Positions 3,117 to 23,860 of a DNA stretch of 43,874 nt are shown piece after piece (positions within the stretch are counted from its first letter, which is position 1; each line of letters opens with the position of its first letter). A program made the position numbers and the translations under genes. The notes under the pieces were generated by a model. It searched no databases. It was not told the DNA's origin and saw nothing but the letters and a program-made list of their open reading frames with translations. The stretch spans positions 711,902 to 755,775 of the forward strand of contig JALDTO010000215.1 of the NCBI GenBank assembly GCA_023515725.1, read 5' to 3'. This DNA comes from Amoeboaphelidium protococcarum X5. Taxonomy: Eukaryota; Fungi; Aphelidiomycota.

Positions 3117-3511
3117 TATCACGATTAATTATCACTTTCACAGCGCAAAGTGAATTTAAAACGGTTGTCAGGAAGAAGAGATGAGTGAGAGATCGGATAT
3201 GTGTCAAGTCCCATGTCTCAAGCGATACTTGGTTAATAAAATAAATCGCGTCATTTCAGATATTGTATCAGTCTTTAGTATTGTGTAATAATTGGTAGTG
3301 TCAAAATTGGGAAGTGTCTGCCAAACTACGTGGTTGACGACCAATCAGCTTGCACCTAGCTTGCATAAGCAGCATCGCTTCCCACACCGGCTCTGCGATA
3401 AAAGGAAATCGCGCTCGCTCTTTCTTCTTCTCTCTTCTTCTTCAAGTCCTCATTGTAATTACAATCAAAGGCTATTTGTCTGAATTTACAGTCATAAGAA
3501 TTTAATTTAGT

Positions 3512-4010: not shown

Positions 4011-5393
4011 ATGGTGGCTGTAGATTACAAGCGATACGTGAATATTGTAAATTCGCTGTGTTTCGATTGGAATTACAAGTATTCGTTCATACTTCCATTG
4101 CTTCTCCTCATGCTGGAGAGTGCGTCTTCGCTGCTCATCATTCGTAACGTACCTTACACCGAGATTGACTGGAAAGCTTATATGCAAGAAGTTGGGCAAT
4201 ATCTTGGTGGCTGTAGAGATTATTCTCTGATTAAAGGTGATACTGGGCCATTGGTTTATCCTGCTGGGTTCGTGTATATTTATTCTGTATTGTTTTAACT
4301 CACAGATGCTGGTTAGAATATCAGATTGGCTCAGTATGTCTTTGCATGTCTATACGTGGTATCTCTGGCGTTAGTTTACCGCATTAGCTGGCATATTAAA
4401 ATAGTCCCACCTATCATGCTCCCACTGCTTTCCATAAGTAAGAGAATACACTCAATCTATATGTTGCGAATGTTCAATGACCCTGTGGCCATGTTGTTCA
4501 TGTATCTTTGCGTTTTGGCACTAGTTAATAAAAAATACACTGTATCAAGTATTTTGTTGTCAGTAGCTCTATCAGTAAAGATGAACATTGTATTATTTCT
4601 TCCTGCGTTCATGATGATTGTCGCTGTGAACCTGTCTCCTCGGTCTCTAATTAAGCATTTGCTGATTATTGTTGCTGTTCAGTTATTACTCGCAGTGCCC
4701 TTCTTGACTAATCAAAGTCATGCCGTGAATTATGTTAGAAGCTCTTTTAATTTGGGGCGTGTTTTTGATTACAAATGGACTGTGAATTGGAAGTTTGTAC
4801 ATCCAGACGTATTTTACTCTTCCAACTTTCATTTATTGTTAGTCTCTGGCTGCGTAAGTCTATGGTGTTTGTTGGGTCATTTCGCATGGACGTAGCAGTT
4901 GGGTATAGTGAAATTTATTTACAGATTTCTTAATGCTCTTCGGCACGATGGTGGTGTTTAAATGGCCAGTATTGACGCGTTGAATATCGTTGCCATGCTC
5001 TCTTTATCCAATCTGGTCGGTATTTGTTTTAGTCGGTCTTTGCACTACTAGTTTTATTCATGGTATTTCTGGTCTCTTCCATTCTTAATTGCTTACTCTA
5101 TAAACGTCTTATTACCGAAATCTTCAGAGTCTGATTCTAATTAGCCTCAGTTTACTGTTAATCATCTAGTAGCATGGTCTTATGGCGTGACTGTCATATT
5201 CACTATCGAGTACTGTTGGAATGTCTATCCTGCCACTCCACTCTCATCTGCAATATTACTCTGCTGCAACTCTTTTGTTCTATTATGTGCATCTATCGCG
5301 TCAGTAGTTGATAGTAGGCGCAAATTTGTAGTTAGCAAGTCCAGTTAGTCGATAAGTCCTGCGACAACAATAACAAAGAGCAAACGAGTATGA
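4011..5393 (+). CDS. ALG3: Dol-P-Man:Man5GlcNAc2-PP-Dol alpha-1,3-mannosyltransferase, 460 aa
   Basis: Motifs [44 protein letters not shown]-like LSVKMN, WTVNWKF, RSLHYQFY (Q = TAG at 5049). Confidence 0.95.
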
Positions 5394-5460
5394 ATTAAAC
5401 GTGATCTAGCCTTTAATCAAATAGATTACTTGTATATATTCATTAACTTACAATTTATCA

Positions 5461-8400
5461 TCAATGAGCACTTTCAGGCACTAAGAGGAAGAGGTCATCC
5501 ATAGAATCAATAATGAGATCCGGCAGAGGGTTTGTGATCAAGTACGGCAAATCGTTATCAATGTGATTCATATCCAACAGAAGCTTTTGGATTCTCTATG
5601 TCTTTTGTGCACTTTCTTGATATGACTTATGACTAATATTTTACATCTCAAGAGCGTCCACATCCCCTAAATTCATAGTGTAATTAGAGTCGATCTAATA
5701 TAAGTGCTACCGTTAAGGAGACCAAGTGCTGACATTAGTTCTAGTTCTATGCACTGGCAAATTCTTAAGTCGTTATGAAGTGTATTGTTGCTAGTGAATA
5801 GTGGGAGATTAATCTCTCAAGTCTTTATGCTTTTTCAGAGATCCATGTAACTACTAGTCCAATTCAGAAAACTGTTATTCCACGTCAGCTCTGGTTCTAT
5901 TGCGATAAATACCCAGAACGACGCATTGATGCTCCAGAGACAGATGACGAAATACTTGAGCGAATGACATTCCAACGAAACGGGGCGATACACGTACACT
6001 CTTGAGTACAGATCCTACAACATTCAAATGATTACTCAAATCTCGCCATCTCTGATACCTGCGGCCACATAACAACTTGACAACATCTGTAATAGCCGGA
6101 GTCCTGAAAGCTTCAAATATCAATCCATCATACATATCACCGGTGAGTACTCGACCAGATGCATATACGGCAGAGTGTGCGTAATATCCAGGGTCCTCAG
6201 TGTTGACATGCGATTCATCCATACTCTCAGCAATCTGTGCATTGAACTAATTTGATTGAGAGAAATTTCCAGCCTTTTATGCAAAGTTTTCATCATCATT
6301 CTCCCATTCGCTAGGATTCGTATTCAATGCTCCCTCTGGCACAGTTCTCCTAAAGGTGAACTTTCGCATAGTGTACGTGATGTCAATAGGATTCATCTCT
6401 GGCGATATTTTTGACGTGAGCTTGGGCAGACATTCCAGCATTTCATGCTTAACCCGCATAAATTTGATATTATTCCTAGTGACAAGCTCCGTGATGACAT
6501 ACTTATCCTTGGTCATGAAATCGATCTGATGAGCTGTCATAACAGCAGCACTGTCCACAAAACGTTCATCATCGCCACCGTCAATTTTACTCTGCTCCAG
6601 AGGTTACTGCAGAACAATCACACAGCTGCAATCAAATAGACCAGCTTTAATGAGATCATTGCGCTTCAAAGATGACCCTTACATGAAGTATACATGAGGA
6701 AATACCGCTATAGATCTCCATTCGTCCTCAGATGGCAGTTGCGGACACAGGATTAGTATAGGAGTTAACTAGCTCTTATCAAGAAACGATGCCCTCACTG
6801 TGCACATAAATGTCCAAACTTCAAAGTTATTAGCGCATAATATAACATGACCTTTCAGTTTGTTGTAATTGCCAGAAAGTACTGCTTTATGTCCTCGTCC
6901 ATGTTGCACATCAGCATCGATATTAAAATCTTGATCAATTGACGCGTCAGCCAGTCTACTTTATTCGATGGATGGAATTTACTTGACCATATAACAAAAT
7001 GGAGATTGCAGATCGTTATCAATCACCAAATGATGTGGTGGACGCGGATGACCAACATATATATTTGCAGATTGCTTTGAATCTGCAGATTGATCCTCCA
7101 GATCTGCATCAACATTTACAGATTAAGAACCATCTGGCGATAGAGTAGGCAGAGAATCAGTACCGTATCTCAGTACTGCCAGACGAGACATAGATTTGGC
7201 AGGAGATGAAGCCGATTAAAACCTATTTGCCGTAGATGATGATGATTGCGGCGACTCTTAATGCAATTTGGACGAAGATCTACGATTAAGAAAGATACTT
7301 TCGGTGAGATTACCAGCATCAACAGCATCCGAGTCGAGTCCACCACTTTGACCAAACATGTCACATTAACAGCTGTCAGACTGGTGATTTTAACGCTGGG
7401 AATGTGAAGGGAACTATTAATCCAAATCGTCTTAAACATTAAACCATTTCTACCAGGTTGATTAAAATTACTCTTTATCAAGCCGCTCAATATCAGCCAA
7501 ATCTTCAATGCAAGAGCAAACAGAAATTATTTTCTCTACCAGGTCATTCTCCGGAAACATGAAATCAGGACCAGGATTAAGGACTAAATGCTCACAATAG
7601 GTATAAACAGTAGACTCATTATTAGGCGTCTTGATGTTGGCTTATGAAGCATTGATTTTCGCCGGAATACGAAACTTAACACCAATCAGAATTACTTGAA
7701 ATTCTGCATACAAGAACCAGCAGACATCACTATAGCGCTTGCCGCAAAATAGCCTATTAAACGGACTAAGTCTAATCACATTACATAAGCCGTCGCCGTA
7801 CTGAACTTACCAATTTTAGTTGTATTTCTTGAGACGAGGAGCAGAATGAATAAGATTTGTTATCAGAGCGCTGGCACCTTTATGAATGCAAGAGATACCT
7901 AAAATCATTTACTTGATACTGTTAACGCAAACCACTTACTTCACAAGAGGTCTTACGTGCAGATCAGTCTCTGGTCTGATGTTAAACGCGTAAACAGGCG
8001 TCTTGCTGCTAAATTTTCTAATTGACCAAACGCGCAAGACATTGCGGCGATCCTCTTCAATGCCATCTGATAAGTGGATACCTTTACTGCGATCAGCAAT
8101 CACAAAGCATGCAGATGCCTGACGTAGACTACAGCGCCGAAGATCATTCTCTTCCAATGCAGATCCTTGTATAAATGCTATACGATGTCTGTATTAAAGA
8201 GAGTTTAGCAATTATTTAATGTCGTGAGTTGGCTTATGAGGACTCAATATAACGATCTAGTAACTAGTAGTCTCCAATATACTATTGACTGTCTTAAAGC
8301 GAGACTAGAAGGCACCCAACTTATCAGCGTGCTAATTTCGATTATATTTAAAGTGCTTCTTCTCACTCAGGAGCGTCAGAGCTTAAGTGAGAATCTCGCG

Positions 8401-14408: not shown

Positions 14409-17400
14409 ATGCTTAACATAAATATATCTTTTAAAGATGAAGTTGGCGTCACAGCAACTTTAAGTCGACTGTCGCGTGAAGAACGTTCTATTGTCCAGCA
14501 TCTCTGGCTGCAAGGTAGTAAGTTGCGCTAGATACCTGAAGTCGTTTTTACTCTTATAAATCTGAAGACTCTGGATCTTGGTGATAATCTTATTGATAAT
14601 GTGCCGGATAAGATTTCGCTGCTTTAATAGTTGACTCTACTGGATCTTTCATGCAATTCATTGTCACGGCTGCCTCGAGAGATGGCAAATTGACACGGCT
14701 TGACACTCTTTACCTGTCTGGAAATTTAATGCATCCAGACTTATGCTTGAACTTTTACAAAGATAGAGCTGGTGTTTAGTAGCTTTTAAGATTCTTTGCA
14801 TCCAACACACTTATTCCCAGAGCAAAGTTAATATCCAAGAGAAGTTGTGAGGATATGTCTGATTCCAATCTTGCCATTGATGCGTGTCATGGTCCTCTGG
14901 AAAGTCGTAAACAATTGGTCAAATTAACACTTCATCATCAAGATAATGACGATTCTCTTATAGATGCTGTCCGACTAGGCTCAGTTCCATTATGTCTACA
15001 AATTCTGGAACGTTCATCACATCTCGTTAAATCGAAATGTCAGAAGTCTGGGCTCTATCCGCTTCATATTGCTGTGATGAAAGATAAGCCCAAAATATTA
15101 AATGCTCTGGTATAATGTGATTTAGCAGTGGTGAACGCTCTTTCAGCACATCAGGATACTGCGCTTCATTAAGCTGCTATGCACAATCGTTTGACGTGCC
15201 TCGAGATATTGCTTTGTCACGATGCTGATATTGAAGCTCTTGATATGTATGGTAATACCCCTTTACTTGTGGCTGCGTCCCGAGGTCATTTGAAGATTTG
15301 TGATGTCTTAATCGCGACTGGTGCTAATATGGGCATCATTAATCAATGTGGTATGAACGTTGAGAGTATACTTCATGAAAGTGTTGGATAAGATGCTGCT
15401 TAGAAATCTCTGAATAGATGGCGCGAGATTACTTAGTAGAGGGTGATTGATTAATGCTGTGCTGATATACTGCTATAGTAGTTTGGTGTGAAATAACTAG
15501 TATTCCAGTCAGGTGGGTTAGATTTTAATCACAAGATCAGTGGTCTAGTCAATTGTATCCGACAAGCTTGGTTGTCTGAACAATAATCATCTGAAATTTT
15601 TTAGATTTGCCAACATCTAGGTCGACAATAAGCAGGTGCGCTGGAAATTCTATTAAATGCACTTGCGATAGGTTCTCTTGTTCGTTATTAACTGACAACG
15701 TCTGATGAGATGCGAGCTGAACTATACTAGTATTTCGAGATGGGATAGACTAGTGGCTCTCTAAATCCACTTTGTTTAATTGCAACTGCTAGATTGTTAT
15801 ACTTGGAACGTGGTGATGCTGCTAGAGTAGATTATTTGGCATTGATCTACAAATTTAAAACTATGGTAAGTGATGGTACTTACTAAGGTTGGCTGACTAG
15901 TTACGAATCTGAGTTATTGAAAGAGAACTTTGAAAGCATTCGCCATAATGTCCTCCTTGAGTAAATTTCTAATTCTAAAGAAAATGATTAGTAAAAGTCA
16001 ATCTTAACTCTTGATCAGTAGCTTCTTGAAGAATGGACTACGGTGGCGGAGGAGCTCAAGCTTTCAGATGTGCAAAGAAAGCCTATGAACGAACTCATGG
16101 GTCTGGTTGGCTTGGTGGAAGTCAAGAGATTAGCAATGAATCTTTTTAAAGATTGTATTTAGAACGCAAGGCTTCTGGAATAAGGATATTCTGAGGCTGT
16201 GTTTCCCATGTCTTTGAATTTCATGTTTGTCGGTAATCCCGGCACTGGAAAGACCTTGGTAGCACAACTATTTGCCCAGATCCTGCATCAAAGTGGAGTT
16301 CGGAGTAATGATAAATTTGTTAAAATGACTGCTGGTGAGGCTTTGAGGAAGGGCATTAAAGCTTTTGCTGCCGATTTGGCAAGTCTGACAGGAGGAAGTT
16401 TGGTAAGTCCACCATGCAACCTTAACGATGTATATAGAAAGAATCTTCAGGTGGAGGTTCTCAGCAATGTTGATGGTCTCTGGTATGCTGGTAACATTTT
16501 GAATGCTGACGCTAATTCCAAACTTTACTCTGTAAAGTATACTGATGACACTGTAGAGGAGAATATCTCCCACTAACGCATCAAGCCGCTCTCTCAGAAA
16601 GCTCATTTGGGTGGTGTTTTGTTCATTGATGAAGCTTATGATTTGAATCCGTCGTCTGATACAATTGGTCGCGCAATATTGTCTGAGATTATGTCTGCCG
16701 CTGAAGAGCATTATAACAAGCTGACTATAATTCTGGCTGGGTACAAGGATGATATTGAATAGAATCTATGTGATTTCAATATTGGTATGTTTTCGCGTTT
16801 TTAGTGGGTATCATTCAACGACTTTACCGAGCCTCAACTTGGTCAAATCTGGAGCGGTATGGTTGATAAAGCTGGAATTGGCATCGAAGGGTCGAAAGAC
16901 TAGTTCACTGCGGTGGTTTAGCGCCGACTTGGAAGAGGGATTGGATGTAAAGGCTTCTCGAATGCTCGAAGTGTCCGGCAACTATTCCATCGGGCTGTGA
17001 TGTCTGCCAAGTCGAAGTATCGCGATGGTCGTTTGACGATGTGTATTGAAGATGTTATTGGTGCGCGGCCTCTCCCGGAGAATATTCCAGAGCTGGCCTC
17101 AGCGCTTAACAGGCTAGATTTTTTGATTGGAATTGAAGATGTCAAGTAGTAGATTCGAAGCATCCTTAAGACGGCTCAAGAGAACTATGATAGAGAACTT
17201 CGACTAGAACCGACCGATTCCATATGCTTGAACAGAATATTCTGGGGACCTCCTGGAACTGGCAAGACTACAGTGGCTGAAATCTATGGTCAAGTTTTGG
17301 CATCTTTGAACTTGCTAAGTAAGGGCGACGTGGTTAAGAAGACTGCTTCAGACTTTATTGGGTAATATATTGGTCAGACTTAAACTAAAACTAATTCCAT

Positions 17401-19279
17401 TATCAAATTGGCTCAAGGGCGCGTTTTGCTTATTGATGAGGCATATGCTCTGCTCGGTAGCTCTGCTAACGAAAAAAGTTTTGGCCAAGATTGTATCAAT
17501 ACTTTGGTCGAGAAAGTTCAAGGGTATCCAGGTGAAGATATTGCTGTAGTATTGATGGGATACAAGTCGGAAATGTAGTAGATGTTGAGAAATTCCAATA
17601 GTGGTCTTGGCCGTAGATTCAACGAGTAGACGGCGTTTGAGTTCAAGGATTTCACTAATGAGCAGCTTTTTCGTATTTTTACTAATGTCTGTACCCAGCG
17701 TTAGCTATCTGCATCAGTATCAGTGAGAGTCCATGCCGTGCAAATTCTTGAAAAAATGAAATTGTTGACCAATTTTGGTAATGCTGGCTCAGTGAACAGC
17801 CTGATCTCTGAAGCTGTGTAGAGAATGATAGCTAGAGGTGAGAGTAGTAGAAAGTTGATCGAAACAGATTTGGAGCATGAAGAGGTCGCTATATTGGCTG
17901 ATAGCTTGTAGTCTATCAGCAGTTATCCTGAACTTTATAAGGAAATGATGAATTTGCAAAGGATTATCAGCAGGCGTAAACAGGAGGGCCGCAATCTGTA
18001 GGATCTCGTCGGCCATTTTGTCTTTATTGGATCACCTGGTACTGGTAAGACTACCGTTGCCAGATAGCTTAGTGTCATTCTCCATAGTTTTGGCCTAATT
18101 GCATCTCCTAAATTGGTAGAAACTTCTGCATATGATCTGGTGGCTAAATACGTTGGCCACACTAGTGCTAATGTTGCCGAGAAGTTGAAAGAAGCTAAAG
18201 GCGGCCTGCTCTTTATCGATGAAGCGTATGAACTGGGATAATCTCAGTTTGGGAAAGACGCGGTTGCAACTCTGGTAAGCTCCCTCACTAAACCAGAGTA
18301 CATGAACGGGAAAACTGTTGTGGTGCTGGCTGGATATACTAAGTAGATGCACTAAATGTTTGAGCTAAATCCCGGACTGAAAGGTCGATTTAATAAGTTT
18401 ATATAGTTTACCGATTGGAATGCTGAACGCTGTGTTGAGTTTGTTAAAGATCAGCTTGCGCAGCTAAAACCTGCTGGCCTTTTTATAGAGCCATCTGCCG
18501 AGACCTCGCTGTCTGAAGGATTTGCAGCGTTGTTAAGTAAACCTGGATGGTGCAATGGTAGAGATGCCGTGGAAATAGTCCGTAAGATTTTGTTTCAAAG
18601 AGATTTGCGTCTCAGTGATGCTGCTGATGATTCAATGTCTTCCGTTGTCAATGCGGATGTAAAGCTTGCATTCGATGAGATGTTGATGGGGCGGCCTATG
18701 GTTGATGCGACTACTAGAGTAGCTGACGATATAATGCAGTTTGGTGAAGCTGCTGTTTAAATTCGTGCAGATGTCAGGCAAAGTGCTGCATCTGGCTTAA
18801 ACTCACGTCCTTGGAATCAAGATTTGGATTCTATTACAAAGAACTGTGCGGCAGTCGCGTGTTAACTTGGCCTTGATGAATGCAATTCGGCGTTGCCAGC
18901 TTAAGATAAGAGTCTATTACTAGACCCTCTTGAACCAAGCTAGTGGGAATGTGACACTGATCGCGCCGCTGCTTAAAAGGATAAAGATGATTTGGAGAGT
19001 TGCCGACTCAGTATGGAAAATGCTCAGAAATTAGTAGCGGATGCAGTTTAGTAAAACATGCCCACAGAAGAGCTGAGCAGACTTGAACGCGAATTATAAA
19101 TAGCTGAGAAGGTCCTTAGTGAATTGAAAGAGAAACTTTTGCAAGAATAGAAATTGCGCAATGCTCTTAGAAGAATTGGTAAATGCGCAATGGGATATGA
19201 ATGGCTACGTGAAGGTAGCGGATATAGATGCGCCGGTGGCTCACATTATGTACACGATAATCAACTAAATGAAATTTGA
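14409..19279 (+). CDS. LRR - ankyrin repeats - three CbxX/SpoVK-type AAA+ domains (first with a Tudor-like insert) - C-terminal Cys/His motif; apparent 1-nt frameshift at ~14685-14690
   Basis: LRRs (LKTLDLGDNLI, LTLLDLSCNSL, LDTLYLSGN); ankyrins (GLYPLHIAV, TALHQAA, GNTPLLVAA); Walker A GNPGTGKT 16232, GPPGTGKT 17246, GSPGTGKT 18029, each with a hhIDEAY Walker B; C-terminal IGKCAMGYEWLREGSGYRCAGGSH; main frame open 14690-19279. Confidence 0.85.
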
Positions 19280-19620
19280 ATATTTGCAATATACTGTAGC
19301 AATAACCTTTATCATTTACATTTTTGCCCATTCACGTACCGCCTGTTGTTTCATTAGATCTTGCAAAGTTCTGCTGAACAGCAATCGGCGCTCTCCGCGT
19401 CATATCAAGTTGAAACAACTCAACTGCCCCTGATTCTATCAACCAGTATCGCTCCCGTGTGGATTGACTATCAGCCCATCAGTGGCTGAATGGATTAACC
19501 AGCTTCTGTCATCATTCTGATTTTTAATTAAACATCACTGCGCCACTGCTCTCTTGCTTCTTGTTGATCTCAAGTGAACTTGTAAATCGTAATAAAATCT
19601 TGTCAAATACTTATATAGCA

Positions 19621-21864
19621 ATGGAGAACGTACTGGTGGCCAAGATTAATTCGCTGCTGTAGGATAACAAAAAGGAACCTCGCAATTACGTACTGCTAGT
19701 TGATGGAAGTGGTTCCATAGCACGCACCGACTTTAATGGCCCGCTGAAGTAGTCACTAACTCGCCTATGTCAAAACCTACTGGCCTCTAACAAATCTGCG
19801 CAGATTGCGGTATATCAATTCTCAGATCATGTTTAAAATCAGATTGGCTTTACCAACAACGCTCCGGCCTTGGTGTCTGCGATCACTAATATGAGTTAGA
19901 TTGGTCATGGCACTGCCACGCTGAATGGTGTGATGGCTGCTCATGAACTCATCAAGACTTAGTCGCGTCTGAGCTCTTTAATCATCTTCACTGATGGAAG
20001 TCCAAATGAAAATCAAGAACCGTATGACTACATTAGTAGTTCGATGCCTGGTGTTGATGTTCTCGCAGTTGGTATTGGTTGTGTTGTTGAGTAGAATCTT
20101 CGCGCAATGACCACCAGCGGGGAGCTGTACTTGGTGTAGAATTTTGATGCTCTGCTTTTGATCATGGAATAGGCGTCTCAAGTAGTTCCGGAACCTCCTG
20201 TCAGCCTTATGCTCACTTGTGGCGAAGACTTTAAAGGTTCAGATTTTGTGAAGAAGATGAATCTAAAGGTGATTTTGTCCAATAAAGGTGATGAAGAGCT
20301 AGCTGGCGGATTCACACTGCAATTCCAAGAATGTAAATACTTTGAAAGTAAGACTGTGTTGATACCTGACACGATTCCTGGAGATGAATCTGTGGAGAAA
20401 GATGTGAAGTTGATCATTCGTCCTGGAGCTGATACGGTTGATTTCCCTGAGATGCTCAAGTACACTATATCCTATGGTCCGGGTGGCAAGTGGCAAGGCT
20501 GTGCCACCTTCATTACTGGCTTCTTGCGTGGTGAATTCTTTACGGATCTCAAGTACAATATTCTACCTTTTGGCGGTAAAGGTCAAGGTAAGAGTTCGCT
20601 GATGAACTCGCTGGCCACCTGCTTGTCCAAAGGCAACTTTGTATTGGACGCGTTCTCTGAGTAAAATCAGAGTGATCATGTCACTGAGAAGTATTCCAAA
20701 CTGGACATGAGCGACTTTATCAATGAGCCGGGATGTGAGAATCTTCCATTCGTATTCTATGATATCTGGGGCACGGATCATGATAATATGGAAGATATGA
20801 AGAATATGTTCAACAATATTATTCGCGGCATGGTACCTGTGGGGACGCATCGTTCCAAGTTGACTGACGTTGATATGACTGCGCGCTCACCTGAGAATCA
20901 TATCCACTGTCTGCTGATTGTCATCCGCCTTTCTGCTTATTTGGACGAGGAGTTGATGGAGCAGGTTGCGTAAATCTCAAAGAAGTGGGCACAACTTGAA
21001 CTAATTGGGCCTATCGTGGTAGTTACTGGTATTGATTAGACTGATGATGAGGGCGCTCGTGAGGAGAGCATGAGAGAGATGTTGAATCGTTTGCCTGTGC
21101 AGAGAGACGTGTTCTTTGTACAGAACTACTCAAAGTAGAGAACTAGAAATGCCAAGATTGATATCTAGATGCGTCAAATCTTGCTGGCCATCCGCTAGAA
21201 TGCTGAGAGAAATATGCAGATTATCAACAAGTTCTTCAATGTGTCTCCTCTTCGCCGTCAAGTGCAGTTTTAGTCCAATGTTCCATCTGCAGCTAATGCG
21301 TAGAATTAGTATGGGAATAGCAGCAACAATTATGTGAACGCACGTAGTCCATATAACTTTTCTGCTTCTAATGTGACTACAATCCATCAGAATGCGTTAC
21401 CAATCTCCGACTCTCGTTCATCTATGGATTCAGGCGTTGATTGTGCCAGCTCTGGTTTGAAGTAGATTTTGGTTGATTTGAATATTCAAGATGCGAATTC
21501 TTCTCTTCAAGGTGTAGAAATTGTTGATTTTCAAGGTCTTTCGCTGCAAGAGATTGTTGCAGAGCTGGAGCTTTTCGATGGATTCACGGCTGAAGAACGT
21601 CTGAAGATTGCCGAGTCGATTTACACTCAGTTGAATGCTCCTGAACAGGGAGCGTAATTAAAAGCATCTCAATGGAAGGATGTGATACCTCCTGGTCTGC
21701 ACAAATCATGTCTCGGTGCACTAGAAGCTAGTGGTATGACTCCTGAGAACTACAACGATGTTAGCTAGGATGAGATTTTATCGAATCTGAGGGATGACTT
21801 GGGATTCTCCAAGATTCAAGCCAACGCAATATCACGCGCTATTTTGTAGTATAAAGCGCTGTGA
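19621..21864 (+). CDS. vWA domain - beta-rich domain - IFI44-like P-loop GTPase - two SAM-like helical repeats, 747 aa
   Basis: MIDAS VLLVDGSGS, GTAT, IIFTDGSP, VLAVGIG; G1 GGKGQGKS (20572), G3 DIWG (20761), HIHCLLIV, G4-like VVVTGID, VQNY; single frame with TAR=Gln. Confidence 0.85.
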
Positions 21865-22090
21865 ATCTCTATTCAGACGGTCCTTTGAAATCGCACGAAT
21901 AGCAGAACTTTATTAATATTAGTGAAATGAAGTAATGAGTAATAAATAAATCAATCAAGAAATACCAATACGAGATTAAATTTTAATGTTGTCTGGATTT
22001 TCCCAGCACGTTTTGGCTAAGCCATCCAGAGATCAAACTCTCTCATCTCCTTGAATCACTAAGCCAATATAATTAAACTGTTTTCACATT

Positions 22091-22600
22091 ATGACAGCTT
22101 AGACTTTTGAAGACTTCTTTTAGCTATTCCTCAATCTGGATGTTTAGCGGTTTAATGGTTAAAGCCAGTAGCAGATTGTCGATTTCCTGAAGCAAGATCT
22201 CGATGGCAGAGGCTTAAAGTATAGCTTGCCCAGACTGCGAGCGTTCAGTCGCCATCTTGAGTAATAGTTATAATAGTAATAGCAAAGTATGACGGTTGAG
22301 ACTGATTTTATCAGCGAAGGTGATCCAACGCGTTCCGATAATGGTTACATGATGGTTGATGGTAAAGACTGGACATCATACCAAGATGCTACTGAAAATG
22401 GCAATCAACAGTAGAATACATCAACTGTGGCCGAGGGAGATTTGTCAAAGGAAGTCAATTTACTGCGTAATAAGTTGAGGCAATAGGAGGAACGAATATA
22501 AAAATTGGAGCAAGTTATTAGTAGATTTACTCATACTGAAGTCGCGTTCTAAACGTTCATCTCTAAACTTCATCACGGGTTGGCGCCAACTAAGAACTGA
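22091..22600 (+). CDS. Hypothetical protein, 169 aa: N-terminal SAM-like helical motif, Gln-rich linker, C-terminal coiled coil
   Basis: ATG to TGA open with TAR=Gln; Gln tract encoded by TAA TAG TTA TAA TAG TAA TAG CAA; heptads LSKEVNLLRNKLRQQEERIQKLE. Confidence 0.7.
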
Positions 22601-22729
22601 TTTGTTATTCAGACTGACTGACTGAGGACTTTGTATGAAGATCTTGCGTAAATGAAATAAAATCAACAATAAAAATGAAATGTAATAGTATTTGAATATA
22701 ACAATTATTCGTATTTAAAAGTGGACATT

Positions 22730-23629
22730 TCATTGCAGCAAAACTTGGCACAAATTTTACAAGTTACTAAACGTGTCAGGATCACCAACACGAATTTCTT
22801 TGAATGTAGAATCCAACTGCAGGTTAAACAAGTGATCAAACCGAGTATCAACTTTAACTGCTCCATTTCCAGCAACTAGAACTACTCCGATCAACTTGGC
22901 TAGAGACTTCTGTCTGGCTACGGCAACCTTCTCATTCACCGACTAACCGGGCTAATTCTTACGTGGCTGAGTATCAACACGACTACCACTGGCAAACAAG
23001 ACCCAAATGGCTTTCTTCACATTATCAATCTCTGATATGTCCGACACGAAATTGACATCAACGTTGAAATTCTATCTGATCAAACCAGTTAGAGACTAAA
23101 CATGAGAATCAGCGCAGTTACAACGATCAATATAAATCTAGAGTGGCTACGGTGAGAAATAATTCTTTACTTTAGAAAATGCACCAGTAACACCTGATTA
23201 TTTCTGAGACTATTTTACAGTTTGCGCATAGTTCATCGCATTTGATTAGCCATGATGAGGATTATGCTAGACTTGATAATTGTGGTGACTCTGATCTTGG
23301 TTCATCATCATCATTGGTGCATTGTGAGGATCTTCAAACTAAGATAACGACGCGTCAACACCAAGTTTAAGTACATTGCGCAACTGCTAGCTGAAATTCA
23401 TACAATTCTTCACTTCACTTTACAGAAAGGAAATTTCTTTAGACTATTATTATACTAATTGATACAGATCAGAATTGTCTTTCTATAAACTGCTAATGTT
23501 ATCCCGCTGTTGATCAAGGCGCGATTACAGCTAGTCAACTTTGGAGTTCAGCTAACTTATCTACTACTGTTACATAACACACGAACCTTTGCGCTAATCC
23601 TCATCTTCACTATTGACTTTGGTGGTCAT
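22730..23629 (-). CDS. Hypothetical protein, 299 aa: N-terminal coiled coil, Q/N/H-rich linker, C-terminal alpha/beta domain
   Basis: ATG 23629 to TGA 22730 open with TAR=Gln; includes track ORF 22757-22939. Confidence 0.7.
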
Positions 23630-23860
23630 TGTCACTATAATCTTCGTACAAACCCAGCCAAGCGCGGTAATCATTAAGCGCGCAAATCAGTAGATAAGTA
23701 CGATGTACTACTTTGCTCGTTTGATCGCCTAAATTCAGCTCAATTGTCTAAACTCGTCCCCACCGCTGTTTCGCAGTCTGAAATCCCATCAAACTGGAAG
23801 TGGAATAGCCATCAATAAAATATCATCATTCTAGTTGCTAATAAAAGTCTAACAGACATT

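Follow-up and report, generated by a model that had tools for sequence, protein, structure and literature searches.

The closest described parallels to the gene cluster considered here are the prokaryotic vWA-MoxR 'ternary' conflict systems with effector-associated domains, and prokaryotic conflict systems are known to combine a GIMAP-septin-like GTPase with vWA and AAA+ proteins (Kaur, Burroughs, Iyer, Aravind, 2020; PMC7159879). The cluster consists of four neighboring genes, g1 to g4, of the aphelid Amoeboaphelidium protococcarum X5, a parasitoid of algae, within a stretch of 43,874 nucleotides of contig JALDTO010000215.1 (positions 711902-755775, assembly GCA_023515725.1; hereafter the window). 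Like the ternary systems, it keeps the gene for a vWA protein linked to that for an AAA+ ATPase and to other genes. Some of the ternary systems likewise contain GIMAP-septin-like GTPase domains, and patchy distribution and the turnover of paralogues and architectures are common to both (PMC7159879). Small helical domains shared by core and neighbor genes have been proposed as homotypic couplers in the ternary systems (PMC7159879), whereas the aphelid cluster has only a marginal motif of this kind.

The differences are equally specific. The aphelid cluster is eukaryotic, is made up of separate genes and bears introns in at least one relative. Its AAA+ protein is not of the MoxR type but is a triple SpoVK/CbbX/EccA-type ATPase with leucine-rich repeats (LRR) and ankyrin (ANK) repeats, its GTPase is fused to the vWA domain itself, and no VMAP, iSTAND or FtsH component and no enzymatic effector was recognized in it with Pfam or PADLOC. 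A gene cluster of this composition was not found in the literature or the family libraries searched. To our knowledge, eukaryotes seldom have conserved clusters of non-metabolic genes that are functionally coupled. The comparisons described below indicate that the cluster is conserved and probably functional, because g2-like genes again adjoin g4-like and g1-like genes in distant lineages. The four genes probably form a functional unit centered on the vWA-GTPase g2.

Layout and recurrent linkage of the four genes

The window was translated throughout with TAA and TAG as glutamine and TGA as the sole stop (table 6). Read in this way it contains 69 frames of at least 150 amino acids, compared with 7 under the standard code, and the UAR-to-Gln code is already on record for A. 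protococcarum (PMC5304391). Database searches with g1, g3 and g4 of the window, which have in-frame TAA and TAG, used stop-free pieces, and family tests against the genome read through the stops. Copy numbers refer to the 23.6-Mb assembly that holds the window. The genes are:

14409..19279, + strand: g1, table-6 open reading frame(s) with LRR, ANK and three AAA+ modules and a 1-base deletion inside
19621..21864, + strand: g2, vWA, beta-sandwich, GTPase, linker and two helical repeats; 747 amino acids, identical to P0011
22091..22600, + strand: g3, table-6 open reading frame of 169 amino acids with a helical N-terminal part, low-complexity linker and coiled coil
22730..23629, - strand: g4, table-6 open reading frame of 299 amino acids with an N-terminal coiled coil, Q/H-rich linker and C-terminal alpha/beta domain

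An earlier reading made without database searches (the sequence-only reading) had described three co-oriented genes and a convergent orphan between vinculin and a MYST histone acetyltransferase, and the layout matches exactly: the spacers are 341 bp (g1-g2) and 226 bp (g2-g3), and g4 converges on g3 with 129 bp between them. The flanking genes were identified as vinculin and MOZ_SAS (the MYST acetyltransferase) by Pfam at L002 and L003, two homeologous loci of the region in the public A. protococcarum assembly GCA_023515745.1 (synonymous divergence, dS, about 0.2). Both have the order SRP14, vinculin, g1 (1629/1628 amino acids), g2 (747), g3 (170/169), g4 (299/300, opposite strand) and MOZ_SAS. 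Since this synteny takes in housekeeping genes, it is by itself uninformative on function. Short spacers are usual in the compact aphelid genome (g4 and MOZ_SAS lie about 230 bp apart in L002/L003), so adjacency alone means little, as the earlier reading had cautioned, and the weight comes from recurrence elsewhere.

All four genes are intact in both homeologous loci, with ratios of nonsynonymous to synonymous substitution (dN/dS) of 0.22 for g1, 0.09 for g2, 0.23 for g3 and 0.17 for g4. They are therefore real genes under purifying selection. The ratios of the neighbors vinculin, ProRS and MOZ_SAS are 0.05-0.085, and g1, g3 and g4 evolve faster than these housekeeping genes. In profile searches of the genome, g1, g2 and g4 are single copy.

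Relatives were identified by an exhaustive search with a 102-amino-acid piece of the g2 GTPase against 1.84 billion representative proteins, among which the g2 family is rare, with 10 representatives. Word-indexed searches returned close kin of the query or nothing, the bacterial, archaeal and viral collections yielded no g2 relatives, and scans of metagenome, genome and viral contigs yielded no further g2-like loci. The relatives' contigs (L004-L010) are metagenome contigs with a GC content of 0.40-0.58, which were compared locally with g1-g4. Their g2-like proteins are 31-40% identical to g2.

The 6-kb contig L006 (GC 0.51) carries at its end a g1-like N-terminus (hidden Markov model [HMM] E 1.3e-5, z 9.1), with a match that runs from the first residues and includes the cap preceding the LRRs, and then a GT-type intron start. 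Three tandem g4-like genes (E 1e-7 to 6e-14) come next, followed by a divergent g2-like gene that lacks vWA (31% identity, E 5e-71), a gene of g3-like architecture, which is a reciprocal best match but not significant (E 0.2-0.3), and a second g2-like gene of which the C-terminal fragment is present. The L007/L008 lineage (GC 0.58) has a g4-like gene (E 4e-5) after its g2-like gene and convergent with it. The vWA exon of the L007 g2-like gene contains a canonical GT-AG intron (586-659), and thus the organism is a eukaryote. L004 and L010 (GC 0.41) encode a full-length vWA-GTPase (40% identity over 745 amino acids), and the first 126 residues of its divergent neighbor on L004 align without gaps to residues 5-130 of g1 (37% identity, E 1.4e-17).

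The linkage of paralogues in related genomes, which the sequence-only reading had named as a way to check its proposal, is thus borne out. Besides the aphelid, two lineages have g4-like genes adjoining g2-like ones (L006, where there are three g4-like genes in tandem, and L007/L008), and two, L004 and L006, have a g1-like LRR N-terminus beside a g2-like gene. All g4-family genes that were found are within about 3 kb of a g2-family gene. Gene order and orientation vary between lineages, tandem paralogues occur on L004, L005 and L006, the vWA domain is present, degenerate or absent across the g2 family, and vinculin and MOZ_SAS are absent from the relatives' contigs. That the members stay together while order, orientation and flanks change is the pattern of selection for linkage. 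For single-copy genes in a 20-Mb genome, such recurrence would be very unlikely by chance.

Several further observations were made at these loci. Directly after the g4-like gene of L007, a gene starting with a coiled coil (3252-3401) runs off the contig and is possibly a further member of the g3 or g4 kind. Read run X7 shows each segment of the region in two variants, and the window's assembly holds only the L003-like copy of g2 and of g4. A table-6 frame on the + strand (23246-23686) overlaps the 5' part of g4 on the opposite strand. Since MOZ_SAS starts about 230 bp past g4 in the orthologous gene models, this is merely an open frame.

The gene products and related families

The table-6 translation of g2 equals P0011 exactly, and P0011 clusters with two A. 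protococcarum 'hypothetical proteins'. Three domain regions were delimited:

19690..20154, + strand: vWA domain with intact metal ion-dependent adhesion site (MIDAS) motif; PF00092, 71.8 bits, E 1.1e-18 (cut-off 23.8)
20515..21234, + strand: GTPase domain of septin/GIMAP-like TRAFAC type; family profile E 3.4e-120, sole match in the genome
21466..21858, + strand: C-terminal helical repeats, rep1 about 21466-21636 and rep2 about 21652-21858, with one HMM per repeat

The vWA domain is the top vWA match of the genome, and its model resembles the solved vWA domains of complement factor B/C2, collagen VI and vWF A with structural Z scores of 20-22. The MIDAS residues DxSxS, T and D are present in P0011 and P0013 in the family alignment. 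Score above cut-off, fold and metal-site motif all indicate that this is a vWA domain with a MIDAS. The vWA-like N-termini of the two g2-like paralogues on L005 look degenerate, with no MIDAS DxSxS evident by eye in 2521-2844 and a vWA match of E 0.016 in 4574-6403. A beta-sandwich is predicted in the g2 model at about residues 194-296, between the vWA and GTPase domains.

The GTPase shows the motifs G1, G2 (T), G3 (DxxG) and a septin-like G4 (T/A-x-x-D) in the family alignment. Against the PDB, its profile matches septin-3 (E 2.7e-9, positions 11-204, about 190 of 253), followed by septin-9/-12, Cdc10, Toc34 and GIMAP, and the single GTPase piece has no match among PDB sequences. Profile similarity and the G1-G4 motifs are shared with septins, GIMAP (AIG1) and Toc34, and they assign the domain to the septin-like (septin/GIMAP/Toc) TRAFAC group. 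In contrast to septins and GIMAPs, no single g2-family sequence reaches the Pfam Septin or AIG1 thresholds, and the domain context is different. Septin proper (PF00735) was rejected because none of the 10 g2-family members has a Septin match at E <= 0.01.

The hallmark of IFI44, an interferon-induced protein of animals like IFI44L, is a TLDc domain N-terminal to the GTPase region. The alignment of g2 shows a P-loop of the form GKS(S) and, after switch II, a hydrophobic strand of 'IHC' type, features that recall IFI44/IFI44L. Unlike these proteins, g2 lacks TLDc and has the vWA domain and beta-sandwich in its place, as well as two C-terminal helical repeats, and a Pfam search with P0001 (97% identical to g2) yields vWA families alone. 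Of the proposed composition of g2, the vWA domain, a GTPase and the two helical repeats were recovered, and membership in IFI44 is not supported. The language-model neighbors of g2 are unnamed animal G-domain clusters with MMR_HSR1 (score 0.96), which is a lead only, and IFI44 is not among the PDB matches of the family profile.

The two helical repeats are related to each other, and both are conserved in relatives in the family alignment. The rep1 HMM also matches the rep2 region in L007 (iE 0.0015), and the pairwise comparison of rep1 with rep2 is not significant (z 0.9). One divergent relative, P0010, matches SAM_TNK (E 8e-6), the complete rep1 of the window has no match to SAM families, and a PDB profile search with the repeats matched designed helical repeats alone. 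The small protein g3 had been expected to start with this same repeat, but what was found is a short motif. Pairwise, g3 and the g2 repeat are not significantly similar (z 1.5), the g3 N-terminus aligns with rep2 by hhalign at 84% over 17 columns, compared with 0.04-0.2% for controls, and the HMM matches to g3 are at E 0.005-0.04 (rep2, 0.011). Among 1261 open reading frames, no sequence outside the family scores better with either repeat HMM than the three g3 orthologues do (E 0.005-0.29). The sharing between g2 and g3 therefore appears to be a 17-residue motif, and a shared domain or homotypic adaptor is marginal only.

The first gene, g1, encodes the multi-domain AAA+ protein:

14409..14690, + strand: N-terminal LRR segment, LRR_8/LRR_4 on the stop-free piece; the frame closes at the TGA at 14691-14693
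14689..14690, + strand: 1-base deletion, a G of relatives missing in the alignment with L002/L003, which shifts the frame
14691..19279, + strand: g1 body with ANK repeats, helical linker, three AAA+ modules, coiled coil and Cys/His-rich C-terminal motif (table-6 open reading frame 14597..19279)
16088..17002, + strand: AAA+ module 1, TIGR02881 at 16088-16330 (model 3-81) and 16547-17002 (model 84-236)
16331-16546, + strand: insert in AAA+ module 1, 72 amino acids between the Walker A and Walker B regions, with weak Agenet/Tudor similarity
17108..17869, + strand: AAA+ module 2, TIGR02881 E 1.1e-46 with TAA/TAG read through
17927..18634, + strand: AAA+ module 3, TIGR02881 E 9.3e-43

ANK repeats were detected by Pfam on a stop-free piece (E 1.7e-14), and in the L002/L003 orthologues LRR_14/LRR_8 lie within one frame of 1629/1628 amino acids. 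The LRR, ANK and three AAA+ domains predicted for g1 are thus all present, but the deletion at 14689/90 means that they do not form one continuous frame in the window. As read in the translation, each of the three modules has intact Walker A and B motifs, and the Agenet match of the module 1 insert (E 3.1e-5, 24.8 bits) lies under the Pfam cut-off of 27. A Cys/His/Gly-rich motif that follows the coiled coil at the C-terminus (19151-19276) is possibly a small zinc-binding knuckle, with no Pfam match and no second copy in the genome.

For all three modules the best NCBIfam models are SpoVK, CbbX and EccA, and each module has an AAA_lid_6. The scores reach E 4e-13 on pieces of 57-70 amino acids and 149-162 bits when read through stops, compared with equivalog cut-offs of about 423-467 bits. 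Because the scores are so far under these cut-offs, the modules belong to the SpoVK/CbbX/EccA clade without being orthologous to any of the three. In a genome search with stops read through, the SpoVK model (TIGR02881) had no match outside the g1 modules. In contrast to SpoVK, CbbX and EccA, g1 has three modules per chain, N-terminal LRR/ANK repeats, the Agenet/Tudor-like insert and a C-terminal coiled coil with the Cys/His motif. AAA+ proteins of this type are chaperone-like remodelers. The MoxR/CbbQ/midasin clade was rejected, since the best matches were always SpoVK/CbbX/EccA and AAA_5 appeared only at E 8e-4 to 0.025, over the P-loop. The sequence-only reading had paired the AAA+ protein with the MIDAS-vWA partner in the manner of MoxR, CbbQ/O and midasin, and with this clade assignment that pairing is not supported. 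In fusing LRR and ANK repeats to an oligomerizing-type P-loop NTPase, g1 also recalls NLR/STAND sensors. However, its NTPase is a classical-type AAA+ in triplicate and not NACHT/NB-ARC, and its repeats are N-terminal.

The 1-base deletion is real, specific to the source strain and fixed in it. An independent contig of the source sample (depth 107) is identical to the window at 14689/90, and no contig there has the extra G. The G is carried by both L002 and L003 and, after 14689, by runs X5, X6 and X7, which are a second sample under the same species label, one under another organism label and a biofilm metagenome. Of the strain and dN/dS comparisons put forward in the sequence-only reading, the homeologues gave purifying selection (0.09-0.23), and the strains differed in the g1 deletion, found in the source strain only. 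Since the window lacks the G, the LRR part is out of frame with the g1 body, and the source-strain g1 is either a fresh pseudogene or produced without the LRR part. It is a natural LRR-less or null g1 allele. In run X6, whose kind is unrecorded, contigs end 7 bp beyond the stop codon of g1 and resume 53 bp ahead of the g2 ATG (gap 19287-19567), and the depth of the g2 contig is 205, about ten times that over g1 (5-26). Separate transcripts, with g2 far more abundant, would fit these contigs, given that the run kind is unrecorded and contig depth is a poor measure.

For g4, a coiled coil plus an alpha/beta domain had been proposed, and both were found:

22733-23212, - strand: C-terminal alpha/beta region of g4, domain of 130 amino acids

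The g4 family profile has a single match in the genome (E 5.6e-35). The model of a g4 homologue (pLDDT, the predicted local distance difference test score, about 90) shows a flavodoxin-like fold of three layers. No fold stands out among its structural matches, with the MnmE and EngA G domains, flavodoxin, IRGQ and TIR all at Z 9.3-10.2 (TIR 9.5). Foldseek gave no match to the g4-like model at E <= 0.001. The alpha/beta domain has no Pfam match, a domain feature search of a protein-cluster atlas was uninformative (score <= 0.83), and the family alignment contains no P-loop and no invariant acidic residue. A TIR/SEFIR domain was rejected, as there is no profile match, the TIR Z score is tied with other flavodoxin-like folds and no acidic residue is invariant. 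Descent of g4 from the g2 G domain as a degenerate copy was also rejected at the sequence level (hhalign probability 0.3%), although G domains top the g4 fold list.

Possible role and rival explanations

Based on the current evidence, the best explanation is a conserved, functionally coupled cluster of aphelid-like eukaryotes with g2 as its hub and a likely function in conflict or stress surveillance resembling innate immunity. This explanation is tentative and has somewhat less than an even chance of being correct. We infer the contacts and the biological role from domain identities, the single copies of g1, g2 and g4, purifying selection and recurrent linkage. Within this scheme, g2 would be a nucleotide-driven switch that dimerizes or oligomerizes on GTP like septins, GIMAPs and Toc GTPases, its MIDAS vWA would grip an acidic ligand, target or partner, and the small g3 protein would bind to its C-terminal helical repeats. 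Through the coiled coils of g3 and g4, the alpha/beta domain of g4 would be recruited as an output or regulatory module. The g1 protein would be a triple AAA+ unfoldase (SpoVK/CbbX/EccA type) that forms pseudo-hexamers. Its LRR and ANK repeats may sense a ligand, and the protein may load, remodel or reset the g2 assembly. The role in conflict or surveillance is suggested by rarity, patchy distribution, tandem expansion, variable architecture, strain-specific disruption and the analogy with the ternary systems (PMC7159879), and an immune role is plausible on that analogy. The sequence-only reading had seen the four genes as one sensor-remodeler-adaptor-effector unit. Recurrent linkage supports such a unit, but the MoxR-type pairing and the clear homotypic adaptor were not retained.

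A number of results weigh against this explanation. The AAA+ clade of g1 is not one known to pair with vWA, the g4 domain has neither identifiable catalytic residues nor a specific fold family, and the dN/dS values of the four genes give no positive selection. Searches for known defense proteins with PADLOC returned coiled-coil or P-loop noise alone. The g1-like genes of L004 and L006 are visible for their first 50-126 residues only, a stretch that would precede an ANK-AAA body, and generic LRR genes of the aphelid genome reach 45 bits against the L004 LRR fragment. Contig L005 has two convergent g2-like paralogues and none of g1, g3 or g4 within 7.9 kb, and on L009 the g2-like gene is followed by an amidase. 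The metagenomic relatives may also all be aphelids, so that part of the linkage could be inherited.

The last point bears on the view that the genes are unrelated neighbors, held together by inherited microsynteny among close uncultured aphelids and joined by chance LRR similarity. The genome is compact with short spacers as the rule, the GC content of the contigs (0.40-0.58) is like that of known aphelids (PMC10608142), other LRR genes of the genome also match the L004 fragment at the 45 bits given above and the g3 similarity is not significant. However, the members remain neighbors although each lineage has its own order and orientation, the housekeeping genes on either side do not accompany them and a g2 identity of 31-40% represents deep divergence. 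The g1-like matches moreover begin at the very N-terminus and include non-LRR flanks, and g4-family genes were found nowhere else, all of which makes this view improbable. A horizontally moving cassette of selfish-element or viral origin, landing in different eukaryotic genomes, would account for the patchy distribution and the compact co-oriented arrangement. A partial open reading frame beside the L005 paralogues (7457-7894) has a 'PPNTT...D' stretch that we take, by eye only, to resemble pogo/DDE-type transposases, and Pfam gives it no match at E 0.05. This origin is very improbable, as relatives are lacking in viral contigs and in bacterial and archaeal genomes, both homeologous A. protococcarum loci are syntenic with housekeeping genes and the composition is like that of the rest of the window.

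Two further possibilities accept that the genes are coupled and differ over what they do. The cluster could be functional but closer to housekeeping, with a septin-like GTPase scaffold, an adhesion-type vWA domain, coiled-coil partners and an AAA+ disassembly factor serving cytoskeleton, membrane or life-stage remodeling (amoeboid, cyst, zoospore) and not immunity. Septins are the nearest solved relatives of the g2 GTPase, g3 and g4 have coiled coils, the AAA+ type of g1 is that of chaperone-like remodelers, and in the aphelid the cluster adjoins vinculin. Purifying selection on all four genes and the lack of similarity to defense proteins in the searches made also fit. Yet the great rarity and patchiness of the g2 family (10 representatives) would be unusual for core cell biology, and the tandem expansions and the vWA domain that is present, degenerate or absent also speak against such a role. 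In addition, a cultured strain with a disrupted g1 has apparently survived, and adjacency to vinculin is not seen on the other contigs. A housekeeping-like function is rather unlikely. The alternative of a eukaryotic counterpart of the bacterial NTPase-centered conflict systems, built as operon-like separate genes, is possible although doubtful. Sensor-remodeler, hub, adaptor and diversifying output would then constitute an innate immune or cell-death device of aphelid-like parasitoids, and the g4 domain would be a new effector or pseudo-NTPase family.

In conclusion, if the products of the four genes work together, as the coupled cluster centered on g2 would require, the bacterial design of NTPase switch, vWA, adaptor and variable output would also exist, made from other parts, in a lineage neighboring the Fungi. 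Functions would in that case also be gained for three families so far annotated only as 'hypothetical protein'. The system is also tractable, since in one cultured strain a natural frameshift cuts the LRR part off g1 and other strains are intact.

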